A stretch of 64,000 bases of DNA, from positions 124,001 through 188,000 of the IMG/VR virus record IMGVR_UViG_3300032236_000747; one strand, given 5' to 3'. This document shows positions 6,215-48,100 of this stretch, in pieces (position 1 is the stretch's first letter; each line of letters opens with the position of its first letter). The translations under genes and the position numbers were made by a program. The notes under the pieces are model-generated. The model was not told where the DNA came from. It saw only the letters and a list, made by a program, of their open reading frames with translations, and did not search any database.

Positions 6215-6217
6215 GAT

Positions 6218-6709: not shown

Positions 6710-6716
6710 TTAAAAT

Positions 6717-8498
6717 ATGACATTTAAACTTAAAACTATAACAGTAAAAAACTTTATGAGCGTGGGTGCTCAGACCCAAGCTGTGGCCTTTGACCGCGAA
6801 CACCTAACATTAGTCTTAGGAGAGAACGTAGATCAAGGCGGTGGCGAAGGTGGAGAACGCAATGGTACAGGTAAAACTACTATCATTAACGCACTCAGCT
6901 ATGCTCTGTATGGACATATCATACGTGCCGAGGTAAGAAAAGAGAATCTAATCAACTTGATCAACGGTAAAGGCATGTTAGTTACTGTTGAGTTTGAACA
7001 AAACGGTGTAAAATACAAGATTGAACGAGGCCGTAAGCCCAATATTTTGAAACTTTACATCAATGATCAAGAGCAAAAGAGCGAAGACAGTGACGAAAGT
7101 CAGGGCGATAGCCGAGAAACACAGAAGCATATAGAACAGTTATTGAACATGAGTCACACTATGTTCAAGCATTTAGTGGCTTTAAACACCTATACTGAGC
7201 CGTTTTTAAGCATGAAAGCGGGCGATCAACGCGAAGTTATTGAACAGTTACTAGGTATTACACTATTAAGTGAAAAAGCAGAACAACTAAAACAACTACT
7301 AAAAGAAACCAAAGATTCTATACAAGCAGAGACATTTAAAATCGACGGAATCAAAAAAGCCAACGAAAATGTACAGAAAAGCATTGAAAGTCTAGCACTC
7401 AAGAGTAGTGCTTGGAATAATAAAAAAGACGAAGATCTAATAAAGCTCAGCAGAGCAATAGCAGACCTTGAATCTATAGACATTGAAGCAGAACTAGGAA
7501 AGCACGCAGACCTTAAAGTATATGACGAACTAAGTGCTAGGATTCGTAGTTTGCAAAAAGAACAAGCAACTATAGAATCTGCTATAGGGCAAGCTGACAA
7601 AACACTTAAAAAATATCTAGAAGAGCTTGATAAACTTGCTAATAAGACATGCCATGCGTGTGAGCAAGAACTACATGACCATAAACACGAAGAAATGACT
7701 GAGTTAGCTCAGAAACATGTAGAAGAAGCTCAAATATATTGTACAAAACTGTTAAACAACTTCAATAAAATCAGAACCGAACTAGATGAAATCGGGGATA
7801 TTAACGGACGTCCTAATACGTACTACGAAACTTTAAACGAAGCATTGGGTCACAGAAACAATCTAGCTAACCTAATGAATAGCTTAGAGAATCGTGCTCT
7901 TGAAGAAAACCCATATGATGAGCAGATAGAAGAGTTAAAGAAGACAGCGTTACAACCGTTAGATTGGGAAATAGTCAACACTTTAACCAAATATCGAGAT
8001 CACCAGGACTTTTTACTCAAGCTGTTAACTAATAAAGATAGTTTTATCCGTAAAAAGATCATAGATCAGAATCTAACGTTCTTAAATAAACGCCTAGGCT
8101 ACTATGTTGACAAACTAGGACTACCACATACTGTTGCTTTCCAAAACGATTTAACTGTTATTATTACACAGTTAGGCAAAGACATAGATTTTTATAACCT
8201 TAGTAGAGGCGAAGGTAACAGAGTTATACTTGCTACTAGCTTTGCGTTTAGAGATGTATGGGAGAACTTGTACCAACCTATTAACTTATTGTTCATCGAT
8301 GAGCTGTTAGACAACGGAACCGATGCTAGCGGTGTGGAAAAGAGTCTTGCTATCCTTAAAAAGATGAGCAGAGAGCGCAATAAGAACATATTTGTTATTA
8401 GTCATAGGGACGAACTGCTAGGTCGAGTTGATAATATCTTGCGTGTTGTTAAAGAAAACGGGTTTACAAGTTATGAAAACTCAGCAGAACCGGTTTGA
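6717..8498 (+). CDS. gp46: Recombination ATPase subunit, Rad50/SbcC-like
   Basis: Walker A GERNGTGKTT, coiled coil with CHAC zinc hook, signature LSRGE, Walker B LLFIDE, H-loop VISH. Confidence 0.95.
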   Translation: MTFKLKTITVKNFMSVGAQTQAVAFDREHLTLVLGENVDQGGGEGGERNGTGKTTIINALSYALYGHIIRAEVRKENLINLINGKGMLVTVEFEQNGVKYKIERGRKPNILKLYINDQEQKSEDSDESQGDSRETQKHIEQLLNMSHTMFKHLVALNTYTEPFLSMKAGDQREVIEQLLGITLLSEKAEQLKQLLKETKDSIQAETFKIDGIKKANENVQKSIESLALKSSAWNNKKDEDLIKLSRAIADLESIDIEAELGKHADLKVYDELSARIRSLQKEQATIESAIGQADKTLKKYLEELDKLANKTCHACEQELHDHKHEEMTELAQKHVEEAQIYCTKLLNNFNKIRTELDEIGDINGRPNTYYETLNEALGHRNNLANLMNSLENRALEENPYDEQIEELKKTALQPLDWEIVNTLTKYRDHQDFLLKLLTNKDSFIRKKIIDQNLTFLNKRLGYYVDKLGLPHTVAFQNDLTVIITQLGKDIDFYNLSRGEGNRVILATSFAFRDVWENLYQPINLLFIDELLDNGTDASGVEKSLAILKKMSRERNKNIFVISHRDELLGRVDNILRVVKENGFTSYENSAEPV

Positions 8499-8525: not shown

Positions 8526-8822
8526 ATGTATACGGATGACTACGAAAAATTACATCAAGCGTACATAGCAAAGATGGTAGAATACCATAATGCGTATCAT
8601 GCATACATGTACGGCGCTCGCAGCAAGCCTAAAAACTTTGCTATGCGTGTTGTATTGAAGGAACTTTTAAAGTTGAATAAGGCACTAATAGCAGAATCGA
8701 TTGCTGTTAGGAAGAAAAAGATAGAAGCGTATAGCGATACCTATCAAGGACAACGGAAAAATAGCGGAGACGCTAGTAGATTTTACAAAAATGACGTGGA
8801 CACATCAGGGGACAATAGTTGA
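8526..8822 (+). CDS. Small basic helical hypothetical protein
   Basis: 98-aa ORF, co-oriented, overlaps the start of the GIY-YIG gene. Confidence 0.65.
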   Translation: MYTDDYEKLHQAYIAKMVEYHNAYHAYMYGARSKPKNFAMRVVLKELLKLNKALIAESIAVRKKKIEAYSDTYQGQRKNSGDASRFYKNDVDTSGDNS

Positions 8823-9216
8823 AACACTACCAGAGGACTGTGTGGGCTTCGTTTATCTCATTACAAATATGCTGACGGGCAGGAAATACGTAGGCAAAAA
8901 ACTAGCGAAATTCGCGAAAACAACTTATAAAACTAAAACACTTAAAAACGGCACCAAAAAAAGGCAAAAGATTCGCAGCAAGGTAGACAGTGACTGGCAA
9001 GAGTATTACGGTTCTAGTGTAGAACTAACAGCAGATATTGCTAAGTTAGGTAAAGATAACTTTTCAAGAGAGATCCTATACTACTGTAAGAGCAAAGCAG
9101 AAACAAGTTATACTGAAGCAAGAGAACAATTCGATAGAAAAGTTTTAGAATCAACAGATTATTATAACGGACAGATATCTGTTCGTGTACATGGCTCACA
9201 CATTTTAAAGAAGTAA
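8791..9216 (+). CDS. Stand-alone GIY-YIG family nuclease (catalytic domain only)
   Basis: 'GFVYLITN...RKYVGKK...DWQEYYGSS...FSREILYYC...SYTEAREQ...YYN' gives the GIY-YIG hairpin motifs, helical Glu and terminal Asn; no C-terminal DNA-binding domain. Confidence 0.8.
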   Translation: MTWTHQGTIVETLPEDCVGFVYLITNMLTGRKYVGKKLAKFAKTTYKTKTLKNGTKKRQKIRSKVDSDWQEYYGSSVELTADIAKLGKDNFSREILYYCKSKAETSYTEAREQFDRKVLESTDYYNGQISVRVHGSHILKK

Positions 9217-19272: not shown

Positions 19273-20454
19273 ATGTCACAATTATTAAATGAAAGATGGT
19301 CAGAGACCAAAGAAGCTCTGCTTGAAGGCCTACAAGGTAACCGCCGTGCTTCTATGCAAGTTTGCTTAGAAAACACACGTAAGTACCTAGCAGAAGCCGC
19401 TACAGCAGGCGCAACAAGTTCTGGTAACGTTGCAACACTTAACCGTGTTATCCTTCCAGTTATCCGTCGTGTAATGCCAACAGTTATTGCTAACGAAATC
19501 ATCGGTGTACAACCAATGACAGGTCCAGTAGCTCAAATCCATACTCTACGTGTTCGTTATGCTGACACTAGTGCTGGTGATGGTATCGTAGCAGGTGAAG
19601 AAGCTCTAAGCCCATTCAAGATTGCTAGTGCTTATTCTGGTAACAGCAATGACACTTCTCCAAAGGCTGCTTCAACAAGCCAACTAGAAGGTCAACCAGG
19701 TAAGCGTATGAGCATTCAAATCTTGAAGGCTCCAGTCGAAGCTAAGTCTCGTAAACTAAGCGCACGCTGGACTTTCGAGGCTGCACAAGATGCACAAGCC
19801 CAACAAGGTATTGACATCGAAGCAGAAATCATGGCTGCTCTAGCTCAAGAAATCACAGCTGAAATCGACCAAGAGATCCTAACATCTCTACGTTCTTTAG
19901 CTTCAGTTGAACAGACTTACGATCAATCGTTGGTATCTGGTACAGCTACATTCGTTGGTGATGAACACGCTGCTCTAGCGATTCTTATCAACCGTGCTGC
20001 TAACTTGATCGCTCAACGTACACGTCGTGGTGCTGCTAACTGGGCAGTTGTTTCTAACCAGGCTCTAACGATCCTACAAAGTGCAACTACTTCAGCTTTT
20101 GCTCGTACTACAGAAGGTACATTCGAAGCTCCAACAAACACCAAGTTCGTTGGTACATTGAACGGCGCAATGCGTGTTTATGTTGACGCATACAAGTCTG
20201 ACACAGACAACAACAACCAGATCCTATTGGGATACAAAGGTGCTAGCGAAGCAGATGCTGCTGCGTTCTATTGCCCATATATTCCGTTGATGTCTTCTGG
20301 TGTTGTTCTTGACCCAGCTACATTCGAACCAGTAGTTGGCTTCCTAACACGCTACGGCTATGTTGAACTAAGCAACACAGCTAGCAGCTTAGGTAATGCC
20401 GCTGACTACTTGGCTAAAGTAGCTATCAATAGCTCAACAGTTAGCTTCCAGTAA
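19273..20454 (+). CDS. gp23: Major capsid protein (T4 gp23-like)
   Basis: 'VILPVIRRVMPTVIANEIIGVQPMTGPVAQIHTLR...VEAKSRKLSARWTFEAAQD...EIDQEI...FYCPYIPL...FEPVVGFLTRYG'. Confidence 0.97.
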   Translation: MSQLLNERWSETKEALLEGLQGNRRASMQVCLENTRKYLAEAATAGATSSGNVATLNRVILPVIRRVMPTVIANEIIGVQPMTGPVAQIHTLRVRYADTSAGDGIVAGEEALSPFKIASAYSGNSNDTSPKAASTSQLEGQPGKRMSIQILKAPVEAKSRKLSARWTFEAAQDAQAQQGIDIEAEIMAALAQEITAEIDQEILTSLRSLASVEQTYDQSLVSGTATFVGDEHAALAILINRAANLIAQRTRRGAANWAVVSNQALTILQSATTSAFARTTEGTFEAPTNTKFVGTLNGAMRVYVDAYKSDTDNNNQILLGYKGASEADAAAFYCPYIPLMSSGVVLDPATFEPVVGFLTRYGYVELSNTASSLGNAADYLAKVAINSSTVSFQ

Positions 20455-23811: not shown

Positions 23812-23907
23812 GATGCCATGCATTAGAGGCAGAACATACTGTGGTAAACCCGCAATGAAAGGTGGTTATCCGTGAAACTCGGTGGTTTAGGAGCTTGTTC
23901 GCATGGC
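23812..23907 (+). promoter_or_regulatory. Candidate structured 5' leader (cis-regulatory RNA)
   Basis: gccatgc 23815-23821 pairs with gcATGgc 23901-23907; gaaca/tgttc; taaacc/ggttta next to the SD; ggtggtt occurs twice. Confidence 0.5.
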
Positions 23908-26900
23908 TGTAGGTCGTATATCCGGTCCGTTATTACAACAGAATTTATTTCGTGATAATGTACCACTGGCCTTTTATAACACAAGCAGCCAGACCGAGAA
24001 CCCAACCTTATACTTAGATGTTACTGCCGGCTTTGTTGGCGTGCAAACATCATCTCCTGCCTACGAACTCGATGTAGCAGGTACTATAAACTCTACTAAT
24101 CTTCGAGTTATTCCAGGTACAAGTACACTTGGAAACATAACAGTAAACGGCAATACTATTGCTACAACAGTTGGGCCTATAACAGTTAAGCCAACCGGGT
24201 TAAACAATATTGTTTTAGATAGTACTGTATCTGCTACAGGCGTAACAACATTTAGCGCAGGTCTAGAATCAACTACATCGACTGGGGGCACCGTATTAGT
24301 TCAAGGCGGTCAAGGTATCACTGGCAACTTATATGTCGGCGGAACAGGTTCTTTTAATACACTAACATCCCAGTATGCGTCAATAAACGGAGATGTTAAC
24401 TCTTCTGATTTTACTAACGGAACATTGGTAGTAAAAGGTGGAGTGGGTGTTAGCCAAGACCTACGAGTAGGTGGAACTATTTACGGTAGTATTAGTACAG
24501 CAAGTATTGCTAACTTCTATTTTACTGCTACTACTATTTCTGTAGATAATACGCAAACTTCGGGGGTATACTACCCTATATTTGCTTCTACTAGCACCGG
24601 ATTCTCTTATCCTAAAACTAATACAAGATTATCTTATAACGTAACTACTGGTATTTTATTCAGCCCTCTTGCTTATATTACTACAACTACAGAAAGCACA
24701 ACTTCTACAGGCGGCGCATTAGTTGTATCAGGCGGCGCAGGAATACACAGTAACTTGTATGTTGGTGCTACAGCTTATGCTAATACTGTTACTGTTGGAA
24801 ATGTTTTAATAACACCAAACCTATCGGCTACTAATGCTACTGTAACTAAGTTAACCGCAACTAACTTTATTGTATCAGCAGTAACCGCATCTAACCTACT
24901 AGTACAAAATACAGCCACCGTTGGAAGAGATTTAAACGTTGGTGGAAATATTGTTGCTCAAGGTAATATCATTGCCAACGGTAATATTGTTTTAGGTAAT
25001 AATACAAGTACTGATACATTAACTATTGATTCAGAGATTCTCAGCGATCTTATTCCTGCTACTCCTAGCAAATATAATATAGGCTCACAAACAAACACTT
25101 GGGCTAAAAGTTATGTAGACACACTATATTCTAATATATTAGCTAGCCAGACAGGCAATGTTACCATTAATCCTGCTAGCAGTTTATTAGAAATCAATGC
25201 TAACATAAAAGTAAACGGTGACAAACCTTTTGGTACTGCGCCAGTTGTTACAAACGTTTTATATGTAACCATGGATGGAGATGATACCAATGATGGTCGT
25301 GCCCAAGACGCAAGCCGTGCTTGCCGTACTATCGGTGGCGCTTTAAAGAGTCCTTATTACGGTCCAGGCACTAGTATCAAAGTTTCTCCTGGTCATTATT
25401 TTGAAAACAATCCGTTGTTACTACAACCGTATACAAGTATTATTGGTAGTGACTTAAGAACAACTAGTATTGAACCAATCAATAAGACACAAGATTTATT
25501 CCACTTACAAAGCGGATGCTATCTAGCACAGATGCAGTTTTTAAATGGACGTAGTGGATTATTGCCAGGAACATACGCAAATGGTTACAATAGAGGTGCA
25601 TATGCCACAGCATTCCCTCCGCAGGTAAATGGCGTAGCTATTGACGTATACCATTCTCCATACATTCAGAACTGTACAAATCAAAGCGGTCCGTGGTTAT
25701 ATGATGGTACCTTGTTTGTTCCTAACCAAACTATTCAAATACCTAGCGCAGTATCAACTGGTACATGGGCAGGTAGTTCAACATCTATCACAGTAACAGT
25801 TAGCACAGGTACTATTGTCGCTGGGATGAGTATCAACGGTGGTCATCAAAACCCGGGTTATTTTAATGCTCGTACATTATTGCTAGCAAACAAAAAGTTC
25901 ATCCAAGAACAAGTTGTTGCTTATGTAAATCAACAGTATCCGTCATTTAGTTACAATCAGGCCCTATGCTTTAGAGACGTTGGTATTATTGTAGAAAACA
26001 TTTCATATGATGCTGCATTTGGTGGCAATCAAAATAGTGTAGAAGCAGGTCTTGCTTACTGGAACGGAGTAGCCAGTGTTATCGCAGGAGAAATTACACA
26101 AACTGTGGCTGCTATTAACTATATCAATAGTTTAACACAAAAGATAATAGTTAACTCAACTGTAACAAACTTATTGGGCTCAGGCAGTACATATACACAG
26201 GTTATTAATACAGCATTAACTGATGGTAGCATAGCTAGCAATAGCATTACAACTAACATCGGAACTATTGTTAACATTATTAACAATGGCCCAAGCAGCG
26301 CACCTGCAATGTATTATAGCGCAGCAGTTGATAGTAGTTTCTTGAGCGCAGAAGTATTGTTACAAGCAAATAGAACATTTATTCAGAATGATACTATTGC
26401 TTGGATTACAAATACATATCCGTCGTTTGTTTATAATCAAGCATTGTGTTTTAGAGATGTTGGATTAATCGTTGATGCTGTAAGTCAAGATATTATTTTA
26501 GGTGGAAATACAAAAACTATCGAAGCTGCCGTGAGTTATTGGAAGGGTGGTTATCCTCAGGTAGTAGGTCAAGAATCTACGACTACACAGGCTATTAATC
26601 ACGCAAGAGACATAGCACTAAAGATTATCAATAATCAAACAGTTACACCCCAAGCAGGTAATGCTAGTACACAAACTGTTAATACATTCTTTAGTGGAGG
26701 CAATGTTGCTGCTCAAGCCGTAGCAAGAAACTTTAATATTATTACCAGCGTTATAATACAAGGCCCCGCAGTTGCACCTCCTGTATTCCAGGGAGCTTCT
26801 GTATTTGCTCCTACTGGTATATCTGGAGATGATGTAAGAACACCTCCAACAGTATTAAGCGTTACACCTGTATCTGGAAATACGTATAACTTAACTATTA

Positions 26901-29608
26901 GTAGTCCAACAGTAAGTAGCGCAACAAATGCAGCTTTATACTTTGGATATACCGCAGTATTCCCTGCGCAAGACGCAGCGGTTCCTGATCAGTGGCAACA
27001 AAGACGTGTTGATCCTATAGGTGCTATGGGCGGAAGTCTTGTTGACGGTGGTGTTGTATCAAAACGCAGTCCTATTCAATCTTTTGTTTATGATGCGTTT
27101 ACACAAGTTACACAAGGTGGCAGAGGCATTCATATTATTAACAGCGGATACGCACAGTTAGTATCTGTGTTTACTATCTTCTGTTCAACTGCGGTTGAAG
27201 TCGACACCGGCGGCATCGCCTCTATTACAAACAGTAACAGCAACTTTGGTAACTACTGTTTAATAGCTAAAGGCTACGGTAATAGAGAGTTCAGCGGAAC
27301 TGTTTATAATCCAGCTAGCCCTTGGTTTATTACCAACGGTGAATACTATCCTACTGGTTATTTCCCAAACAATGGAAGCGTACTAGTGTTTGTTCCCGAC
27401 ACTGCTAATAGACCACACATAGCACAGTTAATGGAAGTTATACCTCCTCAAGGATACATTAACACACAAGGTTTCTCTGGATTCTTAGGAGCACAGATTA
27501 ACATTGGAACATTAACCACTGGTTCAATAACAATATCAGGAGTTAGTAACTCCGGTGTTTCTATAGGTCAAACAGTATATGTAAGAGACCAATATGGCAG
27601 ATCGGGAGTTGATGGTGTTCCTTATCTTGCCACAGGTACAGTAGTAACTGATGTAAGTTTCCAAACGATTACATTAAATCAAGCTATCTTACAAGGTGGC
27701 GGCGATCCTAATAATAATAATTACTTCAATGTTTATACTTGCGGCAATGCTTATTATACTGTATTAAGTAGTACACCTTACCCTAATCCAATACCTGTAG
27801 GACAGTCAATGATCCCACAAATACAAGGTAACGAAGTAGCTGCTCTAAACTTTATTAGTACATTGACTCAAAAAGTTGTTGCTAATAATACAGGAACACA
27901 TTATTCGACTCTTACACAGACTACAATAGCAGGGGTAGCAGGTGGAGGCAACGCAAATAGTTTCATAACAGGATTCTTCAATACTATTAGTAATATAGTC
28001 ATTAACGGAGTTAACTCTGCACCCCAAGTAGTCACCACTGGGACAGTGCCTAGTGGTTCAGGAAGTGCTATTACATTGATCGAATCTAATATAGAATATA
28101 TTACACAAGAAACTATCTCGTATCTTGCTTCTATTCATCCTTCTGCAAACTATAATAAAGTGAAGTGTGCTAGAGATACAGGCTTGATTGTAGAAGCACT
28201 AATACAAGATTTAATATTTGGCGGAACAAGCCAAAGTACATTCGCAGGTTTACAATATTGGAACCAAGGTGCTCTTACTGGAAATATTCCCAGCGAAATA
28301 ACAACTACTACTGCTGCTATCAACTATCTAAGTATACTAGCTCAAGAAGTTATACAAAATGAAACCGGCGGCACAAGGTATCAAAACGTAGTACAGCAAG
28401 TAATAAATCATATACCTGCTACAGCAGCAGAAGCAGCTATTCTTGCTGCTGATTTTAATGTTATAACCAATATACTAACACACGGAACAGCGGGCGTAAC
28501 TGATAATATTGTAGCTAATGGTTTAACATCTAGCACTGTAACAACAGTTCAAAGTGCTTTCTATATCTTACAATCAAACAAGGCTTATCTAGAAGCAGAA
28601 GTAATAGCGTTTATTAATAATGTATATCCCGGATTTACATATAATCAAGCAACATGCATTAGAGATGTTGGCTATATTATTGACAGCGTAAGTTTTGATT
28701 TAATATATGGAGGCAATAGACAAGCAATACAGAGCGGCGTATATTATTATTCATACAGCACAACATCGTCTGCTATAACAAACGAAATAACACAAACTGC
28801 CTCGGCTTATCAATATCTAGGTCAACTAGTTCCTTATATTATTAAAGGAATAACAACTGCCACTGTTCAGAATAATGTACATCAAGTAATACCATCCTCG
28901 ATTGCTACCGATGCCGAAGTGACGATATTACAGAATGAAATTAATACGATAACTAATATTATAACAAATGGACCTAGCGTAGCAGGACCAAAAGTTCCTA
29001 TAGGTTTAACTGCAAGTACTTCTACATCTGTATTAAATGCTGCCAATGCTCTTATAGCTAACCTTCCATTCTTAAAAGCAGAGTTAATGGCATATGTTGA
29101 TAGTTTCTTTGATCTAGGAACTTATCAAACAAAATGTGCTAGGGATGTAAGACTAATATTACAGCAACTGATTTATGATTTACAAAACGGAGGAAACTAT
29201 AACGCAGTTTATTCCGGATTAAGCTATTGGTCTAGAAACGGTACATACCATTTAGTTAATCTAGAAGAGATTGTAACAGACCCGAACTTATTCCCGGATG
29301 GGTGTGTAGTTAACTTCTATCAACGTAGTTATATTAGTGCGTCTGGTTATACATTTGAATATGTAGGAGCAGGAGTTAACTATGGATCACTACCTCAAGT
29401 GGGAGTAGCAGATCCAGTACAGGCACAGGAAGTTATTATGTTAGATGGTGGAAAGGTATTCTATACATCAACAGACCAAAACGGAGATTTTAGGATTGGA
29501 CCAGAGTTGGTTATTAGTCAAGCAACAGGTGTATTGAGCGGTAGAACATTTACTAAATCGTTGTTTGCTAACCTAACACCGTTTATATTAGCGATTGAGG
29601 CAGGATAA
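23903..29608 (+). CDS. Giant virion protein (1901 aa): fibre-like N-terminus, right-handed beta-helix (pectin-lyase-like) segment and five helical C-x-R-D repeats
   Basis: TGALVV-GG-GI shaft repeats; 'VLYVTMDGDDTNDG...ACRTIGGAL...IKVSPGHYFENNPL' beta-helix cap; repeated 'Y...C.RD.G.I......D...GG'. Confidence 0.8.
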   Translation: MAVGRISGPLLQQNLFRDNVPLAFYNTSSQTENPTLYLDVTAGFVGVQTSSPAYELDVAGTINSTNLRVIPGTSTLGNITVNGNTIATTVGPITVKPTGLNNIVLDSTVSATGVTTFSAGLESTTSTGGTVLVQGGQGITGNLYVGGTGSFNTLTSQYASINGDVNSSDFTNGTLVVKGGVGVSQDLRVGGTIYGSISTASIANFYFTATTISVDNTQTSGVYYPIFASTSTGFSYPKTNTRLSYNVTTGILFSPLAYITTTTESTTSTGGALVVSGGAGIHSNLYVGATAYANTVTVGNVLITPNLSATNATVTKLTATNFIVSAVTASNLLVQNTATVGRDLNVGGNIVAQGNIIANGNIVLGNNTSTDTLTIDSEILSDLIPATPSKYNIGSQTNTWAKSYVDTLYSNILASQTGNVTINPASSLLEINANIKVNGDKPFGTAPVVTNVLYVTMDGDDTNDGRAQDASRACRTIGGALKSPYYGPGTSIKVSPGHYFENNPLLLQPYTSIIGSDLRTTSIEPINKTQDLFHLQSGCYLAQMQFLNGRSGLLPGTYANGYNRGAYATAFPPQVNGVAIDVYHSPYIQNCTNQSGPWLYDGTLFVPNQTIQIPSAVSTGTWAGSSTSITVTVSTGTIVAGMSINGGHQNPGYFNARTLLLANKKFIQEQVVAYVNQQYPSFSYNQALCFRDVGIIVENISYDAAFGGNQNSVEAGLAYWNGVASVIAGEITQTVAAINYINSLTQKIIVNSTVTNLLGSGSTYTQVINTALTDGSIASNSITTNIGTIVNIINNGPSSAPAMYYSAAVDSSFLSAEVLLQANRTFIQNDTIAWITNTYPSFVYNQALCFRDVGLIVDAVSQDIILGGNTKTIEAAVSYWKGGYPQVVGQESTTTQAINHARDIALKIINNQTVTPQAGNASTQTVNTFFSGGNVAAQAVARNFNIITSVIIQGPAVAPPVFQGASVFAPTGISGDDVRTPPTVLSVTPVSGNTYNLTISSPTVSSATNAALYFGYTAVFPAQDAAVPDQWQQRRVDPIGAMGGSLVDGGVVSKRSPIQSFVYDAFTQVTQGGRGIHIINSGYAQLVSVFTIFCSTAVEVDTGGIASITNSNSNFGNYCLIAKGYGNREFSGTVYNPASPWFITNGEYYPTGYFPNNGSVLVFVPDTANRPHIAQLMEVIPPQGYINTQGFSGFLGAQINIGTLTTGSITISGVSNSGVSIGQTVYVRDQYGRSGVDGVPYLATGTVVTDVSFQTITLNQAILQGGGDPNNNNYFNVYTCGNAYYTVLSSTPYPNPIPVGQSMIPQIQGNEVAALNFISTLTQKVVANNTGTHYSTLTQTTIAGVAGGGNANSFITGFFNTISNIVINGVNSAPQVVTTGTVPSGSGSAITLIESNIEYITQETISYLASIHPSANYNKVKCARDTGLIVEALIQDLIFGGTSQSTFAGLQYWNQGALTGNIPSEITTTTAAINYLSILAQEVIQNETGGTRYQNVVQQVINHIPATAAEAAILAADFNVITNILTHGTAGVTDNIVANGLTSSTVTTVQSAFYILQSNKAYLEAEVIAFINNVYPGFTYNQATCIRDVGYIIDSVSFDLIYGGNRQAIQSGVYYYSYSTTSSAITNEITQTASAYQYLGQLVPYIIKGITTATVQNNVHQVIPSSIATDAEVTILQNEINTITNIITNGPSVAGPKVPIGLTASTSTSVLNAANALIANLPFLKAELMAYVDSFFDLGTYQTKCARDVRLILQQLIYDLQNGGNYNAVYSGLSYWSRNGTYHLVNLEEIVTDPNLFPDGCVVNFYQRSYISASGYTFEYVGAGVNYGSLPQVGVADPVQAQEVIMLDGGKVFYTSTDQNGDFRIGPELVISQATGVLSGRTFTKSLFANLTPFILAIEAG

Positions 29609-29611
29609 TAT

Positions 29612-29995
29612 ATGGCAACATTACCATTAAACACGTTTAAAACGAAGACAGCAATACTAGGATCAAATACAGGTACCGTAGTTTATACAGCACCGGTTGG
29701 TGTAACAGCCATTGTTCTTATGGCTAACATAGCCAACATAACAAACGCAACACAGTATGTTACTTTATCGCACTATAGAAACTTGCCAGTATTACCGGAT
29801 AGTCAAGGTAACGGTGGACAGATAGGAAACGTAGTTACAGAAGTTGTAAAAAGTTTTGGGTTACCAGCAAATGACAGTGCAAATATTATTAGTGGGAAAA
29901 TGATTGTTGAAAGTTTAGATAGTGTTCAAGCGTATACCAATAACACAGGAACATGCAAATTGATCTTAAGCATATTAGAAACAGCTAACTCGTAA
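29612..29995 (+). CDS. Small beta-sandwich virion protein
   Basis: 127 aa; 'VVYTAPVGVTAIVLMANIAN...LPANDSA...GKMIVESLDSV'. Confidence 0.65.
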   Translation: MATLPLNTFKTKTAILGSNTGTVVYTAPVGVTAIVLMANIANITNATQYVTLSHYRNLPVLPDSQGNGGQIGNVVTEVVKSFGLPANDSANIISGKMIVESLDSVQAYTNNTGTCKLILSILETANS

Positions 29996-30009
29996 GATAG
30001 AGATATATA

Positions 30010-33000
30010 ATGCCAAAAATACTTAGTGGTGCCGTTCTCCAAACAGGTAGTAGTAGTAGTTTTATTACACTATCGGAAGCTCAGCCGGCCCTACAAATTA
30101 CACCAAGTACTGCTACTGGCTTTACTCTTATAGTTAATACTTCTAGTAATGTTGAATATTCTAATATTCTAGGTGATATAACATTTGATGCAGGTAGTCT
30201 TACAAACTATACATCATATCAAGATATTGCTATCTACAATGTAGGTAACGGATATTTTCAAGTATACACTTCTACATTCCTTAATAGTCCTTCGTTAGTA
30301 ACAGACAGTACAAACTCTTTTGGAACAACACAAGGAGCATTTACTGTTGCCGGCGGCGCTGGTATTGGTAAGAACTTATGGGTAGGCGGCTATACAAATA
30401 TTTCAGCTAACATAGCCAGCACAGGTACACAAACTGGAAGTTTAATAATACAAGGCGGAGCAGGTATCAGCGGCGATATCTATCTCGGTGGAAACTTAAT
30501 ATTCACTAATGCTAAACAAGGTACATTAACTGCGGCAAAGATAACTGTAATAGGTACATTTACATCTACATCTACTACAACTGGCGCCATAACTGTAGCA
30601 GGCGGCCTAGGAGTACAAGGTAATGTATACGCAGGAAATATCTACGACAACGGTCGTAGAGTTATTAGTAGTTTAATAGCCGGTAAAGGTATCGCAGTTT
30701 CAACTAGTACAGGACCAACTGTAGTTGTAACCAACACCGGCGTAACAAGTATTAATGCCGGTACCGGTACTGTAATAAGCAGCACTAGCGGTGATGTTAC
30801 TATATGGATTAATCCTAGTGTTACTAATCAAACACTACAACAAGTTACCAATGCAGGTAACAATACTACTAACGCAATATACTTTAACAACCCTACAAAT
30901 GCCGTATCAACACTTACCGGTGGTGCCATATTTGCAGGTGGCGTTAGTATTGCTAGAGATGTATATATTGGCGGAAACATAAACGCTAAAAGTTTAAATG
31001 TTACAAATGCCATAGACAGTACTATATCAGCAAACAACGGTGTATTTAGAACACTTGTTGTAACATCAACAAACTATAGTACAACAACATTTACTAGCAA
31101 TGCTTTGTATGTTGCTGGAGGAGTAGGCGTAGGCACTGATCTAGCTGTTGCCGGCGATGCTGTTATATATGGAAACTTATTCGTTGCCGGAACATATACT
31201 AGTGTTATCTATGAAACTACAGCGATTGCTAGAAGCGTAATAGCATTATCAACGGCATCTGGCCCAGCAGTATTAACAAACGGTAGCGGTATAACTGTAG
31301 GACCTCCTTCTGGAATATACGCAAGTCTATTATTTGACGGAGTGAGTGCTTGGAAGAGCATGGCAAGTGTAGAACCGTCAGTTGATCTAGGTTATAACCT
31401 AGGCACAAGCGGACTAAGATGGGGAACTGTTTACGCAGGTAATGCTGTGTTCAGCAGTGGAGCAAACAGTATCAATCCTCAAACCGGAGCACTAGTTGTT
31501 CAAGGCGGAGTTGGTATTAGCGGAAACTCTGTAATAGGCGGTCAAACATTAATATCTAATGGTACACCGTCTAGTTCAACTGGCACAGGTGCGTTAGTTG
31601 TTCAGGGCGGAGTTGGCGTAGCAGGAAACATATATGCTGGAAATATTTACAGTAACGGAGTATTACTAACCGCAGGTGGTGGTGGTGGTGGCACAGGTTC
31701 CGGTGTAGTAACTTTATTTGCTGGAACTGATACTGCGATTAGTACAGGAACACTAGGTACAACAATATGGAATACCAGTAACCTACAATCTATAACTGAC
31801 AAAGGTAACACAACGGTTAATCCTATTGTTATTACAAACGGTAACAATAGTAATGATCAGAACTCGGGTGCGTTGATTGTATATGGCGGTGTAGGTATAG
31901 GAGAAAATATATTTGTTGGCGGAAGTTCAATACTTAACGGACAAGCTACTAGTATATTATCTACAAATACCTACATATCTGATAATATTGTAGATCTACA
32001 TTATAATGTTAATGATTGGGATCACGATGACGGTAAAGATATTGGATTTAAATTTGATCATTATGCTTCTACAGCAACATCGGGATTTTTAGGAAGAGCA
32101 GATAGCACTGGACATTTAGTTTGGTACAGTACTGGAACTGAAACACCAAGTGGAACTTTTGTTGGCTCGTTTGGTGTATTTGAAACAGGTGTTCTACAAC
32201 TAAACAATACCGGTACAAGTATATATTCACAGGGCGGAATGTCTGTTAACGGATCTGTAAAGATTTTTAACTCTGCAACTATAACAGGAACCATATACGC
32301 AGGCCCGATATATTCTCAAGGCGCACCTATACTTACATCAGCTAACCTAAGCTCTTTTGGTGTTGCTGATATTATCGCAGGCACAGGCACAAGTGTTAGT
32401 ACACAAACAGGTAATGTTACTATTTGGAACTCAGCAAATCTACAAATAGTAACAGGTAACGGAAATACAACAAATAATCCTATTATCATTACTAACACAA
32501 CACCTAGCGTTAGTACACAAACAGGTGCGTTGATTGTATCAGGCGGCGCAGCAATACAGAAATCTTTGTATGTTTCTAATAATATTACAAGCAACTCATT
32601 AACAGCTAATAGTGCTAATATTACTGATCTTTTAGTATATGGAGAAACCATAACCAAAGGACTAGCAGTTAACAGTACAGTGCCGTTCCCTATTAGTGTT
32701 AGTGGATCATATAGTACAACAGGATCAGTATTTGTAAGTAACAGCAATACAGGCACTGATGCCCACACCGGTTATATATTACAAAACGATGTTCATAGTT
32801 TTGTAGAACTAGGAATAAACAGCAGTGGTAGAACTTTTGGACATTATTCTACAGGTTCTGGATATCTATATACAAGTCCAAGCCTTCCTAGTCTTAATAT
32901 TGGTAATAATAGTGTTATAAACTTCTACACACAGGATATAACTTCTCCAAATCCTGCGGCAATGAGCATTGGAAGTACAACTACTACAATCATCAATAAC

Positions 33001-33813
33001 TTGTTTATTGAAGATAACTTTTACTCAAATCATCCTAGCGCAGGATTGATTGTACAGTCAAATGCTAACTCAAGTTATGGTAGTTTTACAATTAGAAATG
33101 CCAACATTGATGGTCAGAGTTATACATTTGATGTAGGCGGAAACAATAGAGCAGGACAAGGCGGAGCAGCTATCAACGAAGGTAGCTTGACATTACGAGA
33201 TGATGTAGCTAATGCCTATAGATTTATTGTTGCCAAAGGCACAGGAAACATTTTAATTAATAAATCTGTTGACGACGGACTACATAACTTACAAGTCAAT
33301 GGCGGCATTATTTCAAATAATTTAGTAGTTACTACAAGTGCTACTATTGCCCAGAGTTTAACTGTAGGAGTTACAACTTTTAACGGGCTAATAACTGTTA
33401 ATACTAGCAGCGTTTTTAACGGATATGCGGTTTTTAACGGTTCAGCAACATTCAACGGGCCCACTGTTTTCAGCGGAACTGTGGTTGTAGGCAGTAGTGC
33501 GCTACAAACTTCGATAACAATGGTAAATACAACGGATCCAACATCGATTGATAGTTTTGATTCTACGTTGTATAGATCTGCAAAAAGTTTGGTGCAGATA
33601 GAAGATGGGAACAGCTTTTACATGGTAGAAGTTGTACTGCTAGTTGACAATGCGGGCACTGTTTATATAAGCCAATATGGTATTATAACAACAGATTCAC
33701 CATTAGGTGATTTCTCAGCTAGCTTAGTAGGAAGATATGTGACATTGTATTTTACAGCATACGAGGCCACAAGTAAACGAATCAACGTAGTTCAAACAGC
33801 AATAGGTGTTTAA
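30010..33813 (+). CDS. Tail/virion fibre protein (1267 aa)
   Basis: Many 'TGAL(V/I)VxGGxGI' repeats; C-terminal 'IDSF...YRSAK..VQI...EV.L......Y.SQYG' domain shared with the next gene. Confidence 0.8.
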   Translation: MPKILSGAVLQTGSSSSFITLSEAQPALQITPSTATGFTLIVNTSSNVEYSNILGDITFDAGSLTNYTSYQDIAIYNVGNGYFQVYTSTFLNSPSLVTDSTNSFGTTQGAFTVAGGAGIGKNLWVGGYTNISANIASTGTQTGSLIIQGGAGISGDIYLGGNLIFTNAKQGTLTAAKITVIGTFTSTSTTTGAITVAGGLGVQGNVYAGNIYDNGRRVISSLIAGKGIAVSTSTGPTVVVTNTGVTSINAGTGTVISSTSGDVTIWINPSVTNQTLQQVTNAGNNTTNAIYFNNPTNAVSTLTGGAIFAGGVSIARDVYIGGNINAKSLNVTNAIDSTISANNGVFRTLVVTSTNYSTTTFTSNALYVAGGVGVGTDLAVAGDAVIYGNLFVAGTYTSVIYETTAIARSVIALSTASGPAVLTNGSGITVGPPSGIYASLLFDGVSAWKSMASVEPSVDLGYNLGTSGLRWGTVYAGNAVFSSGANSINPQTGALVVQGGVGISGNSVIGGQTLISNGTPSSSTGTGALVVQGGVGVAGNIYAGNIYSNGVLLTAGGGGGGTGSGVVTLFAGTDTAISTGTLGTTIWNTSNLQSITDKGNTTVNPIVITNGNNSNDQNSGALIVYGGVGIGENIFVGGSSILNGQATSILSTNTYISDNIVDLHYNVNDWDHDDGKDIGFKFDHYASTATSGFLGRADSTGHLVWYSTGTETPSGTFVGSFGVFETGVLQLNNTGTSIYSQGGMSVNGSVKIFNSATITGTIYAGPIYSQGAPILTSANLSSFGVADIIAGTGTSVSTQTGNVTIWNSANLQIVTGNGNTTNNPIIITNTTPSVSTQTGALIVSGGAAIQKSLYVSNNITSNSLTANSANITDLLVYGETITKGLAVNSTVPFPISVSGSYSTTGSVFVSNSNTGTDAHTGYILQNDVHSFVELGINSSGRTFGHYSTGSGYLYTSPSLPSLNIGNNSVINFYTQDITSPNPAAMSIGSTTTTIINNLFIEDNFYSNHPSAGLIVQSNANSSYGSFTIRNANIDGQSYTFDVGGNNRAGQGGAAINEGSLTLRDDVANAYRFIVAKGTGNILINKSVDDGLHNLQVNGGIISNNLVVTTSATIAQSLTVGVTTFNGLITVNTSSVFNGYAVFNGSATFNGPTVFSGTVVVGSSALQTSITMVNTTDPTSIDSFDSTLYRSAKSLVQIEDGNSFYMVEVVLLVDNAGTVYISQYGIITTDSPLGDFSASLVGRYVTLYFTAYEATSKRINVVQTAIGV

Positions 33814-42160: not shown

Positions 42161-45100
42161 ATGACATATAAGTTAGTCGGGCAAGAAGCATATCAAATAC
42201 CAACAAACGCTGATCTAGGCACGCTTGCCTATCAGAATAGTGATGCCATCAACGTTGGTTTAGTTAACGTTTCTAATACATTAACTATCAGTGGTTTAGT
42301 CGCTCCGCTAACTATTGGTTATTCTCAGGCAACCGCCGGCACATATATATTATTAAATCAAGTTCCCACTAACTTAATGGTCGGTGGTACTGTAAGTGGA
42401 AATAACATCCCTGCCGGTACAACAATTTCAAGTTTTGGTTCCGGTTTTTCTACAGCTCAACCTACCTATACTAACACAACCGCTACAACAATAGTGGCAA
42501 TGACAAGCACCTATGGTATTAGTGTTGCTATGGGAGTTGGCGGCAATGGATTAACCTATGGTACCAGTGTTTCTAGTATCAGCAATACAGGTCTGCCTCA
42601 AACCTATGCTGCTACATCTAGCACAACAGCAGCTAATACAATCTGGGTAGGTACAACAACTAACCTAGCAGTTAATCAACTAGTATATGGAACTGGCATT
42701 GCTACCGGTACCGTTGTTACTAGCATTTTAGCCAACACCTATGCTGTTATTAGTCCGCCTGCTAGCATTACATCCGGTCAAGCAGTTACCTTTGCTCCTA
42801 CAGTTACGCTAAGTGCTGCCATAGCGGCTAATACACTAACGCAGAATATTTTATTCTTCCCTGCTCTTAGTTTAAGTCAGGCTACTAGTAGCGCCCTAAC
42901 ACAAGGCTCTGTACTCAACGCATATTACAACCCAACATCTGCAGGATCTGCTGCTGTTGTTGTACAGAACGGCGGCCTAGGTGTTACAGGAAATACATAC
43001 TTTGCCAACACGGTTACAATAACTTCGTCAGCACAATCATCGTCTACTGCTACCGGTGCACTAGTAGTCAATGGGGGCATGGGCGTAAGTGGTGCACTAT
43101 ACGCTAGTAGTTTTGTTAATCCTACATTTACAGGTGTTCAATACGCTCTTAACAACAGCGGACAGTATTGGGGCGGAATAGGAAGTTTATCTTATGCTGC
43201 TGGTTCTAACTATCAGCAATGGTTTCTAGGTTGGGGACCGAGCACTGGTACTCCCGTAGGAACATCTCTGGTTTGGACCAACAGCGGCACAGTTTTTGTA
43301 ACTTCTACCAACGTATGGACAGTATCAAACTCAACAACTACTGGTGCGCTAGTAGTAGCAGGCGGTGTCGGTATTGGTCAAAACTTAAACGTTGGCGGCA
43401 ACTTAACTGTATTAGGTTCAATCAACGCTACAGTCAATGGTACTATTACATCAGCTACTAACATAGCAGGCGGCACTACTGGTGATATACTTTATCAAAT
43501 ATCAGCAGGCCGCACAGGATTTATCAACATAGCTACAACCAGCGGATGGGTACTAACATCAAACGGTACTACTGCTACATGGGCACCAGCAGCAACACCA
43601 ACAGTAGCAGCTACAGCAACCACAGCTGGCCTAGTCTATGCCGTAACTACTGGTACATTGGCTAACGTATCTAACGTAGCACTAGGATGGCAGGCTGGAC
43701 AAAGCAATACCATAGGCAACTATAATCTTGCTGTTGGTTATCAAGCACTTAAATGCAATACAACTGGGGTTAATAATACAGCTCTTGGCTCTTATGGGTT
43801 AACTGCTAATACTACTGGTTGTGGAAATACAGCCGTTGGTTCTTTTGCTTTATTTCAATCATCAAGTGGATGTAATAACGTAGCTGTAGGTGCTAATGCA
43901 TTAAGAAGCAATACTATAGGTACTGCTAATATAGCGATTGGTAACTCAGCACAATGGTGCACTTGTGGTGCCGCAGCCAGTAACATAGCCGTTGGCGATC
44001 AAGCACTCTATAATAATAGGACAGGTTGCAACAACATTGCTATTGGTTGCTGTGCTTCATACAGCAACTCATACGGCGGCTGTAACTTTGCCGCTGGTCT
44101 AGAAGCATTAAAATTTAACGTAAGTGGATGTAATAACATTGCTGTTGGTAGAGGCGCTTTATTCTTTAATACAGCATCTAATAACACTGCACTAGGTTAC
44201 AGATCGCTCTACGGTAATACTACTGGTGTTAATAACTTTGCCGCAGGCAGTTCAGCAATGGTAAACAACTCCGTTGGTGTTAATAACTTTGCTGCTGGCT
44301 ACCAAGCTATGTGCGCCAATACCGCCGGTAGTTGGAATATTGCTATAGGTCAATGTGCCTTAGTGGCTAATACCACTGGTAACTATAACGTTGCTCTAGG
44401 CTGTAACGCATTGTATGGTAATACTATTGGTAGTTGTAATATTGCTCTTGGTCCTTTTAGTCTGCGAAATAATATATCCGGCAATGACAACTTTGCTGCC
44501 GGCTGGGCCGCACTATCCTCAAACACCAGCGGAAACAATAATACAGCTATTGGACATTGTGGCCTAGCTAAAAATACCAGCGGTATTAATAACGTTGCTA
44601 TAGGTGCATATAGCCTTTATGGAAATACTATCGGTTGTAATAACTTTGCCTCAGGTAATACTGCTCTCTATAATAATATTTCAGGCAACAACAATATTGC
44701 TGTGGGCACACAAGCACTTTATTGTAATACTATCGGGTGTAACAATACCGCGTTAGGCTATGGTGCTCTTAAATGTAATATCTTTGGATATAACAACGTT
44801 GGTATTGGACAATACACACTTGCTGCCAATACTGGCGGTAACAATAGTATCGCTATCGGTCTATGTGCCCTAACTGCTAATATCACAGGTCAATCTAATA
44901 TTGCGCTAGGATGGCTAACCTTATGTAATAATACTATAGGAAACGATAACGTTGCTATTGGATGTAATACGTTGTTATGTAATATATCAGGTTGCGGTAA
45001 TATTGGTATTGGTAATGCTGCTTTACGTAGCAATATTTCGGGCATAGGTAACATCGCGTTAGGTAGTTCCTCATTACAATCAAACTGCGGCGGCAACTAC

Positions 45101-48100
45101 AACGTATCACTTGGTACTAGTGCTTTACAGGCTAACACAGCAGGTAGCTATAACGTAGCACTTGGTGTTAATGCTTTAATGTGTAATACAGTTGGCGGAT
45201 TTAACTTTGGTGCTGGTATATATGCAGGTCAATGTAATCAAAGCGGTAATGGCAACGTTGCTATTGGTTTCTGCACACTATACAACAACACAGTAAGTAA
45301 TAATATTGCCATTGGCTGTTTGTCAATGGTCAACAACAGCACTGGTTACAATAACGTAGCTATTGGTGCAGGTGCGCTTTGTGCTAACATCAGTGGCTTT
45401 CAAAACACTGCTATCGGTTATGGTGCATTAAAAACTAATACTTATGGTCAAAATAACTTTGCTGCTGGCGCTTACTCAATGTGTGCGGCTGTTACAGGTT
45501 GCGATAATATTGGTATTGGATTTGCTAGTCTTAAAGTTAACAACGGTCCAAGTAACGTAGCTCTTGGCAGTTACGCTATGTGCTGTAACGGGACTGGCCA
45601 AAACAACATTGCCATTGGTTGCTTGGCTATGTTTAAAAACACATCAGGTAGTTGTAACGTAGCGTTAGGTAATAACGTGCTGTGTAGCAACACCTACGGT
45701 AACAATAACATAGCATTCGGTGCATCCGCATTGAGAAATAACAACACTGGATCATATAACTTTGCCGCTGGAAACAGTGCTTTGTTTAACAATATCAGCG
45801 GTAACTACAACATAGCTATTGGTCAAAGTTCTCTAAACTGCAACGTCACTGGTATCAGTAACGTTGGTCTCGGACTTAATACACTTTACTATCATGTAGG
45901 TAGTATTCGAAATGTAGCTATTGGACAGTATGCTATGCAAGGTGTATCTGGTCAAAGTTTAAACTGCGATAACTTCGGTGTCGGCTACGGTGCATTAAAA
46001 AATAACTTAACTGGTTGCTCAAACGTAGCTATCGGTCTCAATACTCTACAGTCTAATCAAAATGGACACCATAACCTAGCATTTGGTTGTTCGGCAATGT
46101 ATGCTAACACAGGCGGTTGTTATAATACAGCCATAGGTCCATATGCACTTCTTTGTAATACTACTGGCTCTTTTAATATTGCTATTGGTCCAAACGCACT
46201 ATGCTGTAACACATATGGTCAAAATAACTTTGCTGCTGGCTATAACGCACTGTTAAGTAACACCACCGGTAGTAATAATATTGCTATTGGTTGCTGTGTA
46301 CTAGGATTAAACTCTAGTGGTAGTCAAAATATTGGTATTGGATTCACTTCTCTACGTAATAACACCACCGGTAGTAATAATATTGCCATGGGACGTGCTG
46401 CCCTATGTCAAAACCTTGTTGGTTCAAACAACGTTGCTCTGGGATTTTGTTCGTTAACCTATAATACATATGGTAACTGTAACGTTGCCATTGGACAAAA
46501 TACATTATATTGTAACACCGCTGGTAACTATAATATTGCACTAGGACTAAGTGCGCTTTACTGTAATACTATTGGTAACTGTAACGTAGCATTTGGTATA
46601 AACGCACTATATGCTAACACTACAGGTGTTAATAACTTTGCTGCTGGTGCTAACGCTCTTAATAATAACACAACTGGTTGTGGAAATACTGCCATAGGTT
46701 GTGCTTCGTTGTGTAAAAATACCGGAGGTATGAATAATACTTCAGTGGGTTCTGGCGCATTAGCTAGCAATACATATGGATGTAATAACGTAGGCATAGG
46801 ATTCTTTGCTCTACAAAACAACTTAACAGGTGTTAACAACGTTGGTATTGGTTGTGCAACCATGCAGTACAACACAGGATCACATAACTTTGCCGTTGGA
46901 GGTTATACTCTACGCGGAGTTACCGGTCAACTTAACTGTGGCGGATGTAACATTTCTATAGGCCTATGTTCTATGTATTTCAATACATACGGTAACAATA
47001 ACGTAGCACTAGGAGCAAGTACTTTACTATGTAATAGTAGCGGTTTTAATAACGTTGCCATTGGTCCGTTGGTAATGAACTCTAACACTGTTGGATACAG
47101 CAACGTTGCCTTAGGCAATACTACACTATATGCTAATACAGGCGGAACTTATAACGTAGCACTAGGTGCAAGAGCAATGTATGGTAATATTACCGGCGCT
47201 GGTAACATTGCCATGGGCTGTCAATCATTATATTGTTCGTTTGGTGGCAATAACAACCTCGCTCTAGGCGGCCAAACATTATACAATAACACCACAGGCA
47301 GCAATAATATTGCCTTAGGTCAAACAGCACTGTTCTGCAATACAATAGGCTGTAATAACGTTGCGATTGGTTTAAACTCACAGGGTTATAACACTATAGG
47401 TTATCATAATATATCGATAGGCCGAGATACATTATATTGCAATATTTCTGGTAACTATAACGTAGCACTAGGATACTGCGCCCTTTACCTTAATACTATC
47501 GGTTCTAATAATATAGCAATAGGTATTTGTGCGTTATATTGTAATACAAGTGGCCTTAATAACTTTGCTGCAGGATATGGAGCATTAAAAACAAACACCA
47601 CAGGGCAGAATAATATTGCTATTGGGTGTACAGCATTAGGCAATGCTAATACTTTAGGTTCAGCTAACGTGGCATTAGGTTATGCTGCATTAAGAGCAAA
47701 CTTTGTAGGTTGCGGTAACTTTGCTGCTATCACTGGTTCTTTATTAGCCAATGCCTGCGGTAGCAATAATATAGGTATTGGCTGTAACTCACTAGGAAAT
47801 AACTTAACTGGTGTTAATAATATTGCCTTAGGTTATACTGCTTTATATAATAGTACTTCAAATAACAACATAGCAATAGGTTATCAATCTGGTTGTTCTA
47901 TTACCAGCGGCGGCTATAATGTTATTATAGGTTCGTATACTGGTGTTGATATTCCGACAAATACTGGTACAGTTGTTTTATCCGACGGTAATGGCTCTAT
48001 TAAAGAGTTTTACACATCAACTGGTGCGTTGTCATTTGGTTCTACTAATAACTTTGGTTCTCCTGGACAGGTACTGGTAAGTTCTGGAGCCTCAGCTTCC

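Follow-up and report, generated by a model that had tools for sequence, protein, structure and literature searches.

Can the virion of a phage carry the protein fold with which cyanobacteria harvest light, and can it carry the pigment as well? The question is raised by a gene in IMG/VR virus record IMGVR_UViG_3300032236_000747, in a stretch of 64,000 nucleotides (nt; hereafter the window) that spans positions 124,001-188,000 of the 354,680-bp Joint Genome Institute (JGI) contig Ga0335263_1128169. The open reading frame (ORF) in question is 5,706 nt long and encodes a tail-fibre or baseplate-associated virion protein of 1,901 amino acids (aa), for which an earlier note, made from the sequence alone, had proposed five phycobiliprotein-like helical repeats, each with a Cys that might attach a bilin. 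We find that an array of domains homologous to phycobiliproteins is very probably present in this protein. The full reading that we favour, in which each unit of that array is also bilin-bound, we judge to be evenly poised.

The motif that draws attention to this protein is more than a chance pattern. The protein holds 12 Cys residues, and those at 689, 849, 1422, 1585 and 1745 each fall within a C-x-R-D motif (CFRDVG, CFRDVG, CARDTG, CIRDVG and CARDVR), with spacings of 160, 573, 163 and 160 aa between successive motif Cys. These five residues and their codons (Table 1) are exactly as first noted. Amino-acid composition predicts 0.0009 C-x-R-D motifs where five are found, and at least one appears in 140 of 20,000 shuffled sequences, which together rule out a chance origin. 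The motif-bearing repeats are 28-38% identical to one another. Using a profile built from the units of other proteins only, without any rows from the window, we delimit four full units (E from 1e-55 to 1e-59) and two half-units, one of which ends the second array and holds the fifth motif. The count of five repeats therefore holds for the Cys motifs; as a description of the anatomy it gives way to four full units plus two half-units. The units are arranged as beads, with G-P-rich linkers of about 20 aa between them, and the unit is absent from every other ORF of the window.

Several kinds of sequence comparison lead to the phycobiliproteins. In Pfam, the only real match of the 1,901-aa protein is PF00502 (Phycobilisome protein), the family that the earlier note had named for the comparison, at E 1.1e-4 and with 22.6 bits, just over the cut-off of 22.2. 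The match covers aa 676-749, inside unit 1, which when searched alone scores 16.6 bits, under the cut-off. Among 146 single units, 11 match PF00502 at E<0.01 and no other family recurs, and most of the 120 closest homologues have precomputed PF00502 matches. Against 177,635 distinct PDB sequences, a profile of the five window units has 39 matches at E<=10, 37 of them phycobiliproteins; the best, phycocyanin chain 6jpr_A, has an E of 0.0015 and is aligned around the chromophore helix. A profile of the 146 units gives the same outcome, with top matches almost all to phycocyanin alpha chains, and the PDB alignments run along KCaRDvGyyl..Y.LvaGG. We also compared the units by hhalign with alignments of CpcA and CpcB (the alpha and beta subunits of phycocyanin) taken from cpcBA loci in metagenomes. 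The hhalign probability is 91% (P 1.1e-6) against 94 CpcA sequences and 89.7%, over 97 columns, against CpcA plus CpcB, while for reversed or column-shuffled controls it is at most 1.4%. We take this sequence signal to be real and to be concentrated on the segment of the bilin site. A search of the protein in NCBIfam gave no match, as did a megablast of the gene against phage records, and an ESM Atlas feature search, with scores of at most 0.63, was uninformative.

The predicted fold agrees with the sequence. We modelled unit 2 with AlphaFold, giving it no templates and an alignment restricted to phage units, and obtained an all-helical model, with a predicted local distance difference test score (pLDDT) of 94.1 and a predicted template modelling score (pTM) of 0.86. 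Its helices (the B, E, F', F, G, H core) are at residues 22-33, 35-49, 57-77, 81-88, 102-120 and 144-164. In a Foldseek search of the PDB, phycobiliproteins are 50 of the top 50 matches (TM-score 0.53-0.68). In VIA-align, which is independent of Foldseek and was run over 48,161 chain representatives, the top eight matches are phycobiliproteins or the bilin-binding domain of ApcE (Z 12.4-15.5), four of them with a root-mean-square deviation (rmsd) of 2.0-2.6 Å over 115-124 residues; globin-coupled sensors come next, at Z about 12. The globin-like helical core of phycobiliproteins is thus recovered by both methods from the model. The low-rmsd alignments begin at model residue 19-20, which corresponds to phycobiliprotein residue 32-33, and ahead of the core the model has only a lower-confidence linker in place of the N-terminal X-Y hairpin, so that the unit, as modelled, is the phycobiliprotein globin-like core minus that hairpin. 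The Cys-bearing helix stops 17 residues past the Cys at a G-G turn, as it does in CpcA. The earlier note had further read the unit length of about 160 aa as a match to CpcA; this is partly a coincidence, since the X-Y helices are absent from the unit, whose length includes about 20 aa of linker and an extended G-H loop, and its Cys therefore lies near position 60 and not 84. A cluster search of the AlphaFold DB returned weak globin-like matches only and no closer cellular family, and the fold matches in BFVD are cyanophage tail and structural proteins, plus uncultured phages. With Pfam, PDB profiles, hhalign and fold in agreement, the central proposal of tandem phycobiliprotein or globin-fold domains in a virion protein stands, and we are confident, short of certain, that the unit is a homologue of the phycobiliproteins.

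The units are a phage-specific family that shares ancestry with phycobiliproteins and is nearest in sequence to CpcA. The unit and CpcA have the same helical core and the same K-C-x-R-D...G-G segment on the central helix, and the Tyr upstream of the Cys in the unit aligns with the Tyr of the CpcA GNNY segment. They differ in several respects: the X-Y hairpin is missing from the unit, its B-E loop is shorter by about 11 residues, its G-H loop is longer, and the invariant Asp74 and Tyr90 are specific to the phage lineage. CpcA is a free 162-aa antenna subunit of cyanobacteria, and phycobiliproteins in general are free subunits of 160-185 aa encoded in cyanobacterial or red-algal genomes, in which the X-Y hairpin builds the alpha-beta monomer and the (alpha-beta)3 disc; the unit, in contrast, is a tandem domain of a 1,901-aa phage protein. 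A cellular precedent among the fold matches for a phycobiliprotein fold within a large multidomain protein is ApcE, of which 4xxi_A is the third-best structural match (Z 14.2, rmsd 2.1 Å over 117 residues), with full-length ApcE chains next. ApcE has one such domain and no array, it keeps the surfaces for assembly of the allophycocyanin core, and it is cellular and not virion-borne. ApcE attaches its bilin without a lyase, which makes lyase-independent loading of such a domain possible, and its bilin Cys is at a different position. Another relative is PecA, the phycoerythrocyanin alpha subunit, which is alpha-type, has a Cys84-bound bilin and is among the sequence matches (2c7j_A). PecA is reversibly photochromic, making a light-switch role conceivable, but it requires an isomerising E/F-type lyase and works within the antenna rod. 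The globins of globin-coupled sensors and the globin-like domains of photocobilins have the same superfold (Z 11-12) and are sensor modules fused to other domains; they bind haem via a proximal His, or biliverdin plus B12, whereas the phage units have no conserved His and have Cys-Arg-Asp instead. In layout the array resembles the tandem decoration or spacer domains of fibres and capsids, such as immunoglobulin-like (Ig-like) repeats, which are also beads on a string, of variable copy number, in giant virion proteins. Those repeats are beta-sandwiches with no conserved cofactor-type site, whereas the unit is all-helical and has the fold of a host-derived pigment protein.

If the fold is inherited, the pigment site may be inherited with it. 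In all five motif-bearing units, HMMER and hhalign align the C-x-R-D with Cys84, Arg86 and Asp87 of CpcA, on helix E. In phycobiliproteins the bilin is attached to Cys84 through a thioether bond, with its central pyrrole nitrogens hydrogen-bonded to Asp87 and a propionate paired with Arg86. The earlier note had made the proposal of an attached bilin depend on conservation of the Cys across homologues, and we find it in 95-98% of units in two sets. Across 614 units the conservation is 98% for Cys60, 99% for Arg62, 99% for Asp63, 100% for Asp74 and 100% for Tyr90, and across 1,351 units from 141 diverse proteins it is 94.8, 94.7, 98.0, 99.6 and 97.8% at the same positions; the C-R-D triad is retained in 92.5-97% of homologous units. 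These residues are also lost together. R-D is retained in 1,250 of 1,281 Cys-bearing units (97.6%) versus 27 of 70 Cys-less units (38.6%), an odds ratio of 64 among units that are not independent of one another. The Cys-less units are often without Tyr90 too, and Asp74 is retained in 70 of 70. Where the Cys is replaced it is mostly by F, Y or W, which suggests a cavity being filled. Judged by these patterns, Cys, Arg, Asp and Tyr90 act together as a single functional site, and the role of Asp74 is structural. A haem-binding globin is ruled out as unlikely, as there is no conserved proximal His: in none of 173 columns does the His frequency exceed 10.8% over the 1,351 units.

The simplest reading is that the ancestral bilin site has been retained in the phage units. 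The Cys-x-Arg-Asp on the long central helix would be that site, under strong selection together with one Tyr, and since its residues are kept in this way, each unit would most likely carry a bilin covalently on its Cys. The bilin would be acquired inside the infected cell, either autocatalytically or by means of a host or phage lyase, and the fibre would be a biliprotein on the virion exterior. Its likeliest use may be to help the rod-like array fold and stay stable, as in phycobiliproteins, and, second to that, to make the adsorption apparatus responsive to light. Covalently bound bilin is described as also stabilising the phycobiliprotein (PMC2327270). On bilin binding by the units, taken by itself, we place as much credence as on its opposite.

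An exhaustive profile search of 1.84 billion cluster representatives finds 1,593 proteins at E<=1e-3, of which the largest reaches 6,382 aa and the most repetitive has 39 matched stretches. With five motif-bearing units, where relatives have up to about 39, the window protein is a short member of this family. The architecture of the 120 closest homologues is a first half of a beta-rich domain (bhN), 0-13 units, a second half (bhC), 1-18 units and a C-terminal domain, which closes nearly all of them; the N-terminal fibre-like region is present in only a subset. In four homologues (P0042, P0047, P0120 and P0070) bhN and bhC are contiguous, so the first unit array is an insertion inside one beta-rich domain. 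In this family a giant tail-fibre or baseplate protein thus has a beta-rich domain that is interrupted by one array and followed by the other. That interrupted domain is probably beta-helix-like: an AlphaFold model of the contiguous bhN-bhC has short strands only, with pLDDT >90 for the first 90 ordered residues and 66 overall, and a profile search of PDB sequences gave no match for it. A C-terminal half-unit follows bhC in 75 of 115 homologues, opening the second array, and an N-terminal half-unit stands ahead of the C-terminal domain in 109 of 118, ending it. The two half-units might complement each other, closing the array into a loop, or they might belong to the flanking domains. The PHROG matches of the 1,901-aa protein are to tail-fibre and virion-structural families, with E down to 6e-77, and both of the families that match the C-terminal domain (Table 1) align to it by their own C-terminal ends.

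Table 1. Features of the repeat-bearing virion gene and of the gene that follows it, in window coordinates.
Feature	Residues (aa)	Position	Strand	Motif Cys codon	Evidence
Virion protein gene (tail-fibre or baseplate-associated), carries the repeats	1-1901	23903..29608	+		ORF list, translation, PHROG, structural module
N-terminal fibre-like region (Nfib), G/T/S/N/V-rich	1-440	23903..25222	+		translation
bhN, first half of beta-rich, probably beta-helix-like domain	441-633	25223..25801	+		phmmer segment mapping, 120 homologues
Unit 1, phycobiliprotein-like	632-799	25796..26299	+	Cys689, 25967-25969	profile E 8.6e-58
Unit 2, the modelled unit	792-957	26276..26773	+	Cys849, 26447-26449	profile E 5.8e-56
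bhC, second half of the interrupted beta-rich domain plus further beta-rich region	963-1300	26789..27802	+		
C-terminal half-unit, last two helices, no Cys motif	1302-1372	27806..28018	+		profile positions 101-172, E 2e-9
Unit 3	1364-1531	27992..28495	+	Cys1422, 28166-28168	profile E 3.5e-55
Unit 4	1527-1694	28481..28984	+	Cys1585, 28655-28657	profile E 8.9e-59
N-terminal half-unit, helices up to F'	1685-1789	28955..29269	+	Cys1745, 29135-29137	profile positions 2-107, E 5e-31
C-terminal domain, common to phage tail-fibre families	1796-1901	29288..29605	+		phrog_17885, phrog_3442
Downstream gene, function unknown	127 in all	29612..29995	+		phrog_1276

Among cultured phages the units are found in phages of cyanobacteria. 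In 50,697 phage records, tblastn with the window units matches 201 records and with a unit of phage P-HM2 353 records, all of which are named Synechococcus phage, Prochlorococcus phage or Cyanophage, except one unclassified marine virus. The matched cyanophages span the Kyanoviridae and the Llyrvirus S-SKS1. The collection has no bias towards cyanophages, since a control, another fibre protein of the window, matches phages of Pelagibacter, Roseobacter, Methylophilales, Bacillus and Staphylococcus. In isolates, the annotation of the unit-bearing proteins is gp7 baseplate wedge, tail fibre or virion structural protein. The P-HM2 gp7 baseplate wedge (4,454 aa) has two units, with KCARD and KCIRD; the S-PM2 tail fibre p091 (3,339 aa) has at least five, all with C-x-R-D; and DSL-LC03 has three, two of them with CIRD and CKRD. 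S-SKS1, which is neither in the Kyanoviridae nor T4-like, has a single unit with C-A-D-D, the Arg being replaced by Asp. This unit sits in a 928-aa hypothetical protein (5467-8253 of the retrieved stretch), near psbD and purine-synthesis genes and with no obvious tail module around. For cellular genomes, a scan of 185,579 species genomes with a degenerate form of the motif gives ten stretches, all in contigs of metagenome-assembled genomes or draft assemblies, and none in a genome labelled cyanobacterial. The nominal carriers are Rhodobacteraceae Water_Bin34, Crocinitomicaceae, Yoonia, Poseidoniaceae, Syntrophomonadaceae and a Gammaproteobacteria assembly. Contig coverage is very uneven within one bin, so the motif contigs are most likely mis-binned phage contigs, and by these surveys the unit family appears to be phage-borne.

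Several observations weigh against reading the units as bilin-bearing homologues of phycobiliproteins. In the sequence comparison, the hhalign score falls from 45.8 to 20.0, and the probability to 1.9%, once the five K-C-A-R-D columns are masked, so that the similarity outside the motif is weak and homology rests on the motif and the fold together; and the PDB and Pfam E-values are marginal, from 1e-4 to 1e-2. As regards the pigment, the tandem copy number is highly variable, as it is in purely structural spacer domains; phage P-SSM2 encodes ho1 and pebS and yet has no unit in its whole genome; we found no lyase-like or bilin-synthesis gene in the window; and the capsid protein of the window phage groups it with jumbo phages of Proteobacteria, which leaves its access to phycocyanobilin or phycoerythrobilin uncertain.

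The masked comparison speaks for convergence, by which the unit would be a globin-like helical domain of separate origin, of the globin-coupled sensor or RsbR type for example, with C-x-R-D arisen by chance. So does the structural ranking, where globin-coupled sensors reach a Z close to that of the lowest of the phycobiliprotein matches and where a helical-fold Z under about 13 can reflect a common arrangement only. However, every top structural match is a phycobiliprotein, CpcA has the motif on the same helix and equally far from the G-G turn, its flanking residues match the Y..KC.RD.G....Y.L..GG pattern, and the masked alignment, for all its loss of score, remains co-linear with the unmasked one. 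The restriction of the family, among cultured phages, to those of phycobiliprotein-bearing hosts also argues for common ancestry, and we consider convergence very unlikely.

The remaining observations bear on structural reuse without a pigment, in which the unit, derived from a phycobiliprotein, would serve as a rigid helical bead to determine how long, stiff or decorated the fibre is, and the roles for which Cys, Arg, Asp and Tyr are kept would be folding, metal binding or cross-linking between chains. The range of copy number in both arrays, up to about 39 units in a protein, is the behaviour of a spacer. Asp74, the most conserved residue of all, is not a phycobiliprotein feature, and the unit does without the X-Y helices that are used in phycobiliprotein assembly. 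The missing bilin and lyase genes in the neighbourhood and the unit-less P-SSM2 fit reuse as well. For a spacer in oxic water, however, it would be unusual to keep a single Cys in 95-98% of paralogues that are 25-40% identical, and an odd number of such Cys per chain (five in the window protein) argues against simple disulfide pairing. The residues kept are exactly the bilin-contact residues of the ancestor; Arg-Asp decay with the loss of Cys, whereas the structural Asp74 does not; and the aromatic replacements of Cys suggest that a cavity is being filled. We regard reuse without pigment as a possibility of some weight which is, on balance, doubtful.

The bilin-bearing reading has a more specific form, which we think improbable, in which bilin-loaded units make the baseplate or fibres light-responsive and so gate adsorption, and in which phage lyases and bilin-synthesis genes would help to load the units. 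Phages P-HM1 and P-HM2 fail to adsorb in darkness, and the adsorption of S-PM2 depends on light but not on host photosynthesis; as the cause, host receptors and/or tail fibres have been suggested (PMC6628666). The role of phage bilin genes has been called a mystery or unresolved (PMC3037559, PMC2984593), and in cluster C cyanophages an S-type lyase is present and psbA and hli are absent (PMC10665884). All three phages with light-dependent adsorption carry units, which we found in P-HM1 by tblastn and in P-HM2 and S-PM2 by direct check, and P-HM1 and P-HM2 encode ho1, pebS and cpeT. The dark-adsorbing P-SSM2 and the light-independent P-SSP7 are without units: a six-frame profile scan of the whole P-SSM2 genome (NC_006883) gives a best E of 0.24, and none was found in P-SSP7. 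This correlation, however, consists of five phages from three lineages. Light still enhances the adsorption of P-SSM2, which carries ho1 and pebS without units, and Syn1 has units but no cpeT. In addition, T-type lyases act on the beta-153 site and not on Cys84, and most phycobiliproteins are antennae and not switches. The fold itself can act as a light switch, given the photochromism of the phycoerythrocyanin alpha subunit. As a separate observation, P-SSM2 encodes a 5,195-aa gp7 besides its haem oxygenase and PebS. The stronger idea that phage bilin genes serve solely for loading units is rejected, with P-SSM2 as the counter-example. That cyanophage virions carry their own biliproteins as a light sensor gating adsorption is, in our view, unlikely; if true, it would account for light-dependent adsorption and, in part, for the bilin lyase and synthesis genes of cyanophages, and it would be the first known photoreceptor built into a virus particle.

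To our knowledge, phycobiliproteins have otherwise been described only from the antennae of cyanobacteria, red algae and cryptophytes, where they serve as subunits, and from the ApcE linker. Full-text literature searches, incomplete in their coverage, found no description of a phycobiliprotein-like domain in phage virion proteins, and automated PF00502 matches on such proteins are already in databases. The units are a new, phage-borne, tandem, X-Y-less branch of the phycobiliprotein superfamily. On the parts of phage particles that contact the host, a derived phycobiliprotein family is present with up to about 39 copies in tandem; it keeps its pigment-attachment residues and, among cultured phages, belongs to cyanophages only, bar the one unclassified marine virus. 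If the units bind bilin, the light-only adsorption of some cyanophages becomes directly testable with S-PM2, P-HM1 and P-HM2, and so does the purpose of phage lyases and bilin-synthesis genes with existing isolates; a small, self-contained and possibly self-loading bilin-binding domain could also serve as a fluorescent tag. If they bind none, they are still a clear example of a virion building block made from a light-harvesting protein of the host, and the unit could be a candidate marker, needing validation, for cyanophage-like contigs in metagenomes.

By its capsid protein, the phage that carries this gene appears to be an uncultured RaK2/GAP32-like jumbo phage of about 355 kb. The window holds T4-type portal, prohead protease, capsid and baseplate genes, and the repeat gene lies downstream of the portal, prohead protease and major capsid genes, in the structural module. 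The major capsid protein (19273-20454) is 68-71% identical to those of RaK2/GAP32/CBB-like jumbo phages of Proteobacteria, with Sinorhizobium Phosso, Vibrio 2.275.O and Cronobacter GAP32 among its relatives, and the cultured RaK2/GAP32-like members infect Proteobacteria. The earlier note had cautioned that the domains do not prove a cyanobacterial host, and these relatives bear the caution out. That the phage has this module in common with cyanophages points either to a cyanobacterial host or to a common gene pool, and proves neither. The window has no tRNA and no host-like gene. A syntenic relative of 357,895 bp, CACUVV010000001.1, has a 3,267-aa version of the protein, with ten full units in the first array, and with five unit matches and both half-units in the second.

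The gene directly downstream of the repeat gene has a 128-aa counterpart at the same place in the syntenic relative and no Pfam match; its position would suit a fibre-assembly factor, which is a guess. Further giant structural genes are at 30010-33813, 42161-49126 and 55331-62749 (1,267, 2,321 and 2,472 aa). The 1,267-aa protein has no tblastn match among the 50,697 phage records, and the 2,321-aa protein has a fibre module in common with Pelagibacter, Roseobacter, Methylophilales and Bacillus phages. To the left of the window on the same contig (18320-22100 of the flanking stretch), a 4,579-aa gene stands by gp25 and a gene for a 1,236-aa DUF8360 protein. It is probably the gp7-like baseplate giant of this phage, and the unit is absent from its first 1,260 residues, the part examined. 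A SegE-type GIY-YIG homing endonuclease at 8791-9216 (E 4e-33), which overlaps a 98-aa ORF, lies just downstream of an SbcC/gp46-like gene (6717-8498), and an SbcD/gp47-like phosphoesterase (5201-6214) and a 2-oxoglutarate (2OG)-Fe(II) oxygenase (6218-6709) lie just upstream of that gene. Finally, three consecutive genes at 51896-55307 (465, 262 and 410 aa) each end in a Laminin_G_3/concanavalin-like lectin domain; they lie between giant fibre genes, and their products are probably receptor-binding tips.

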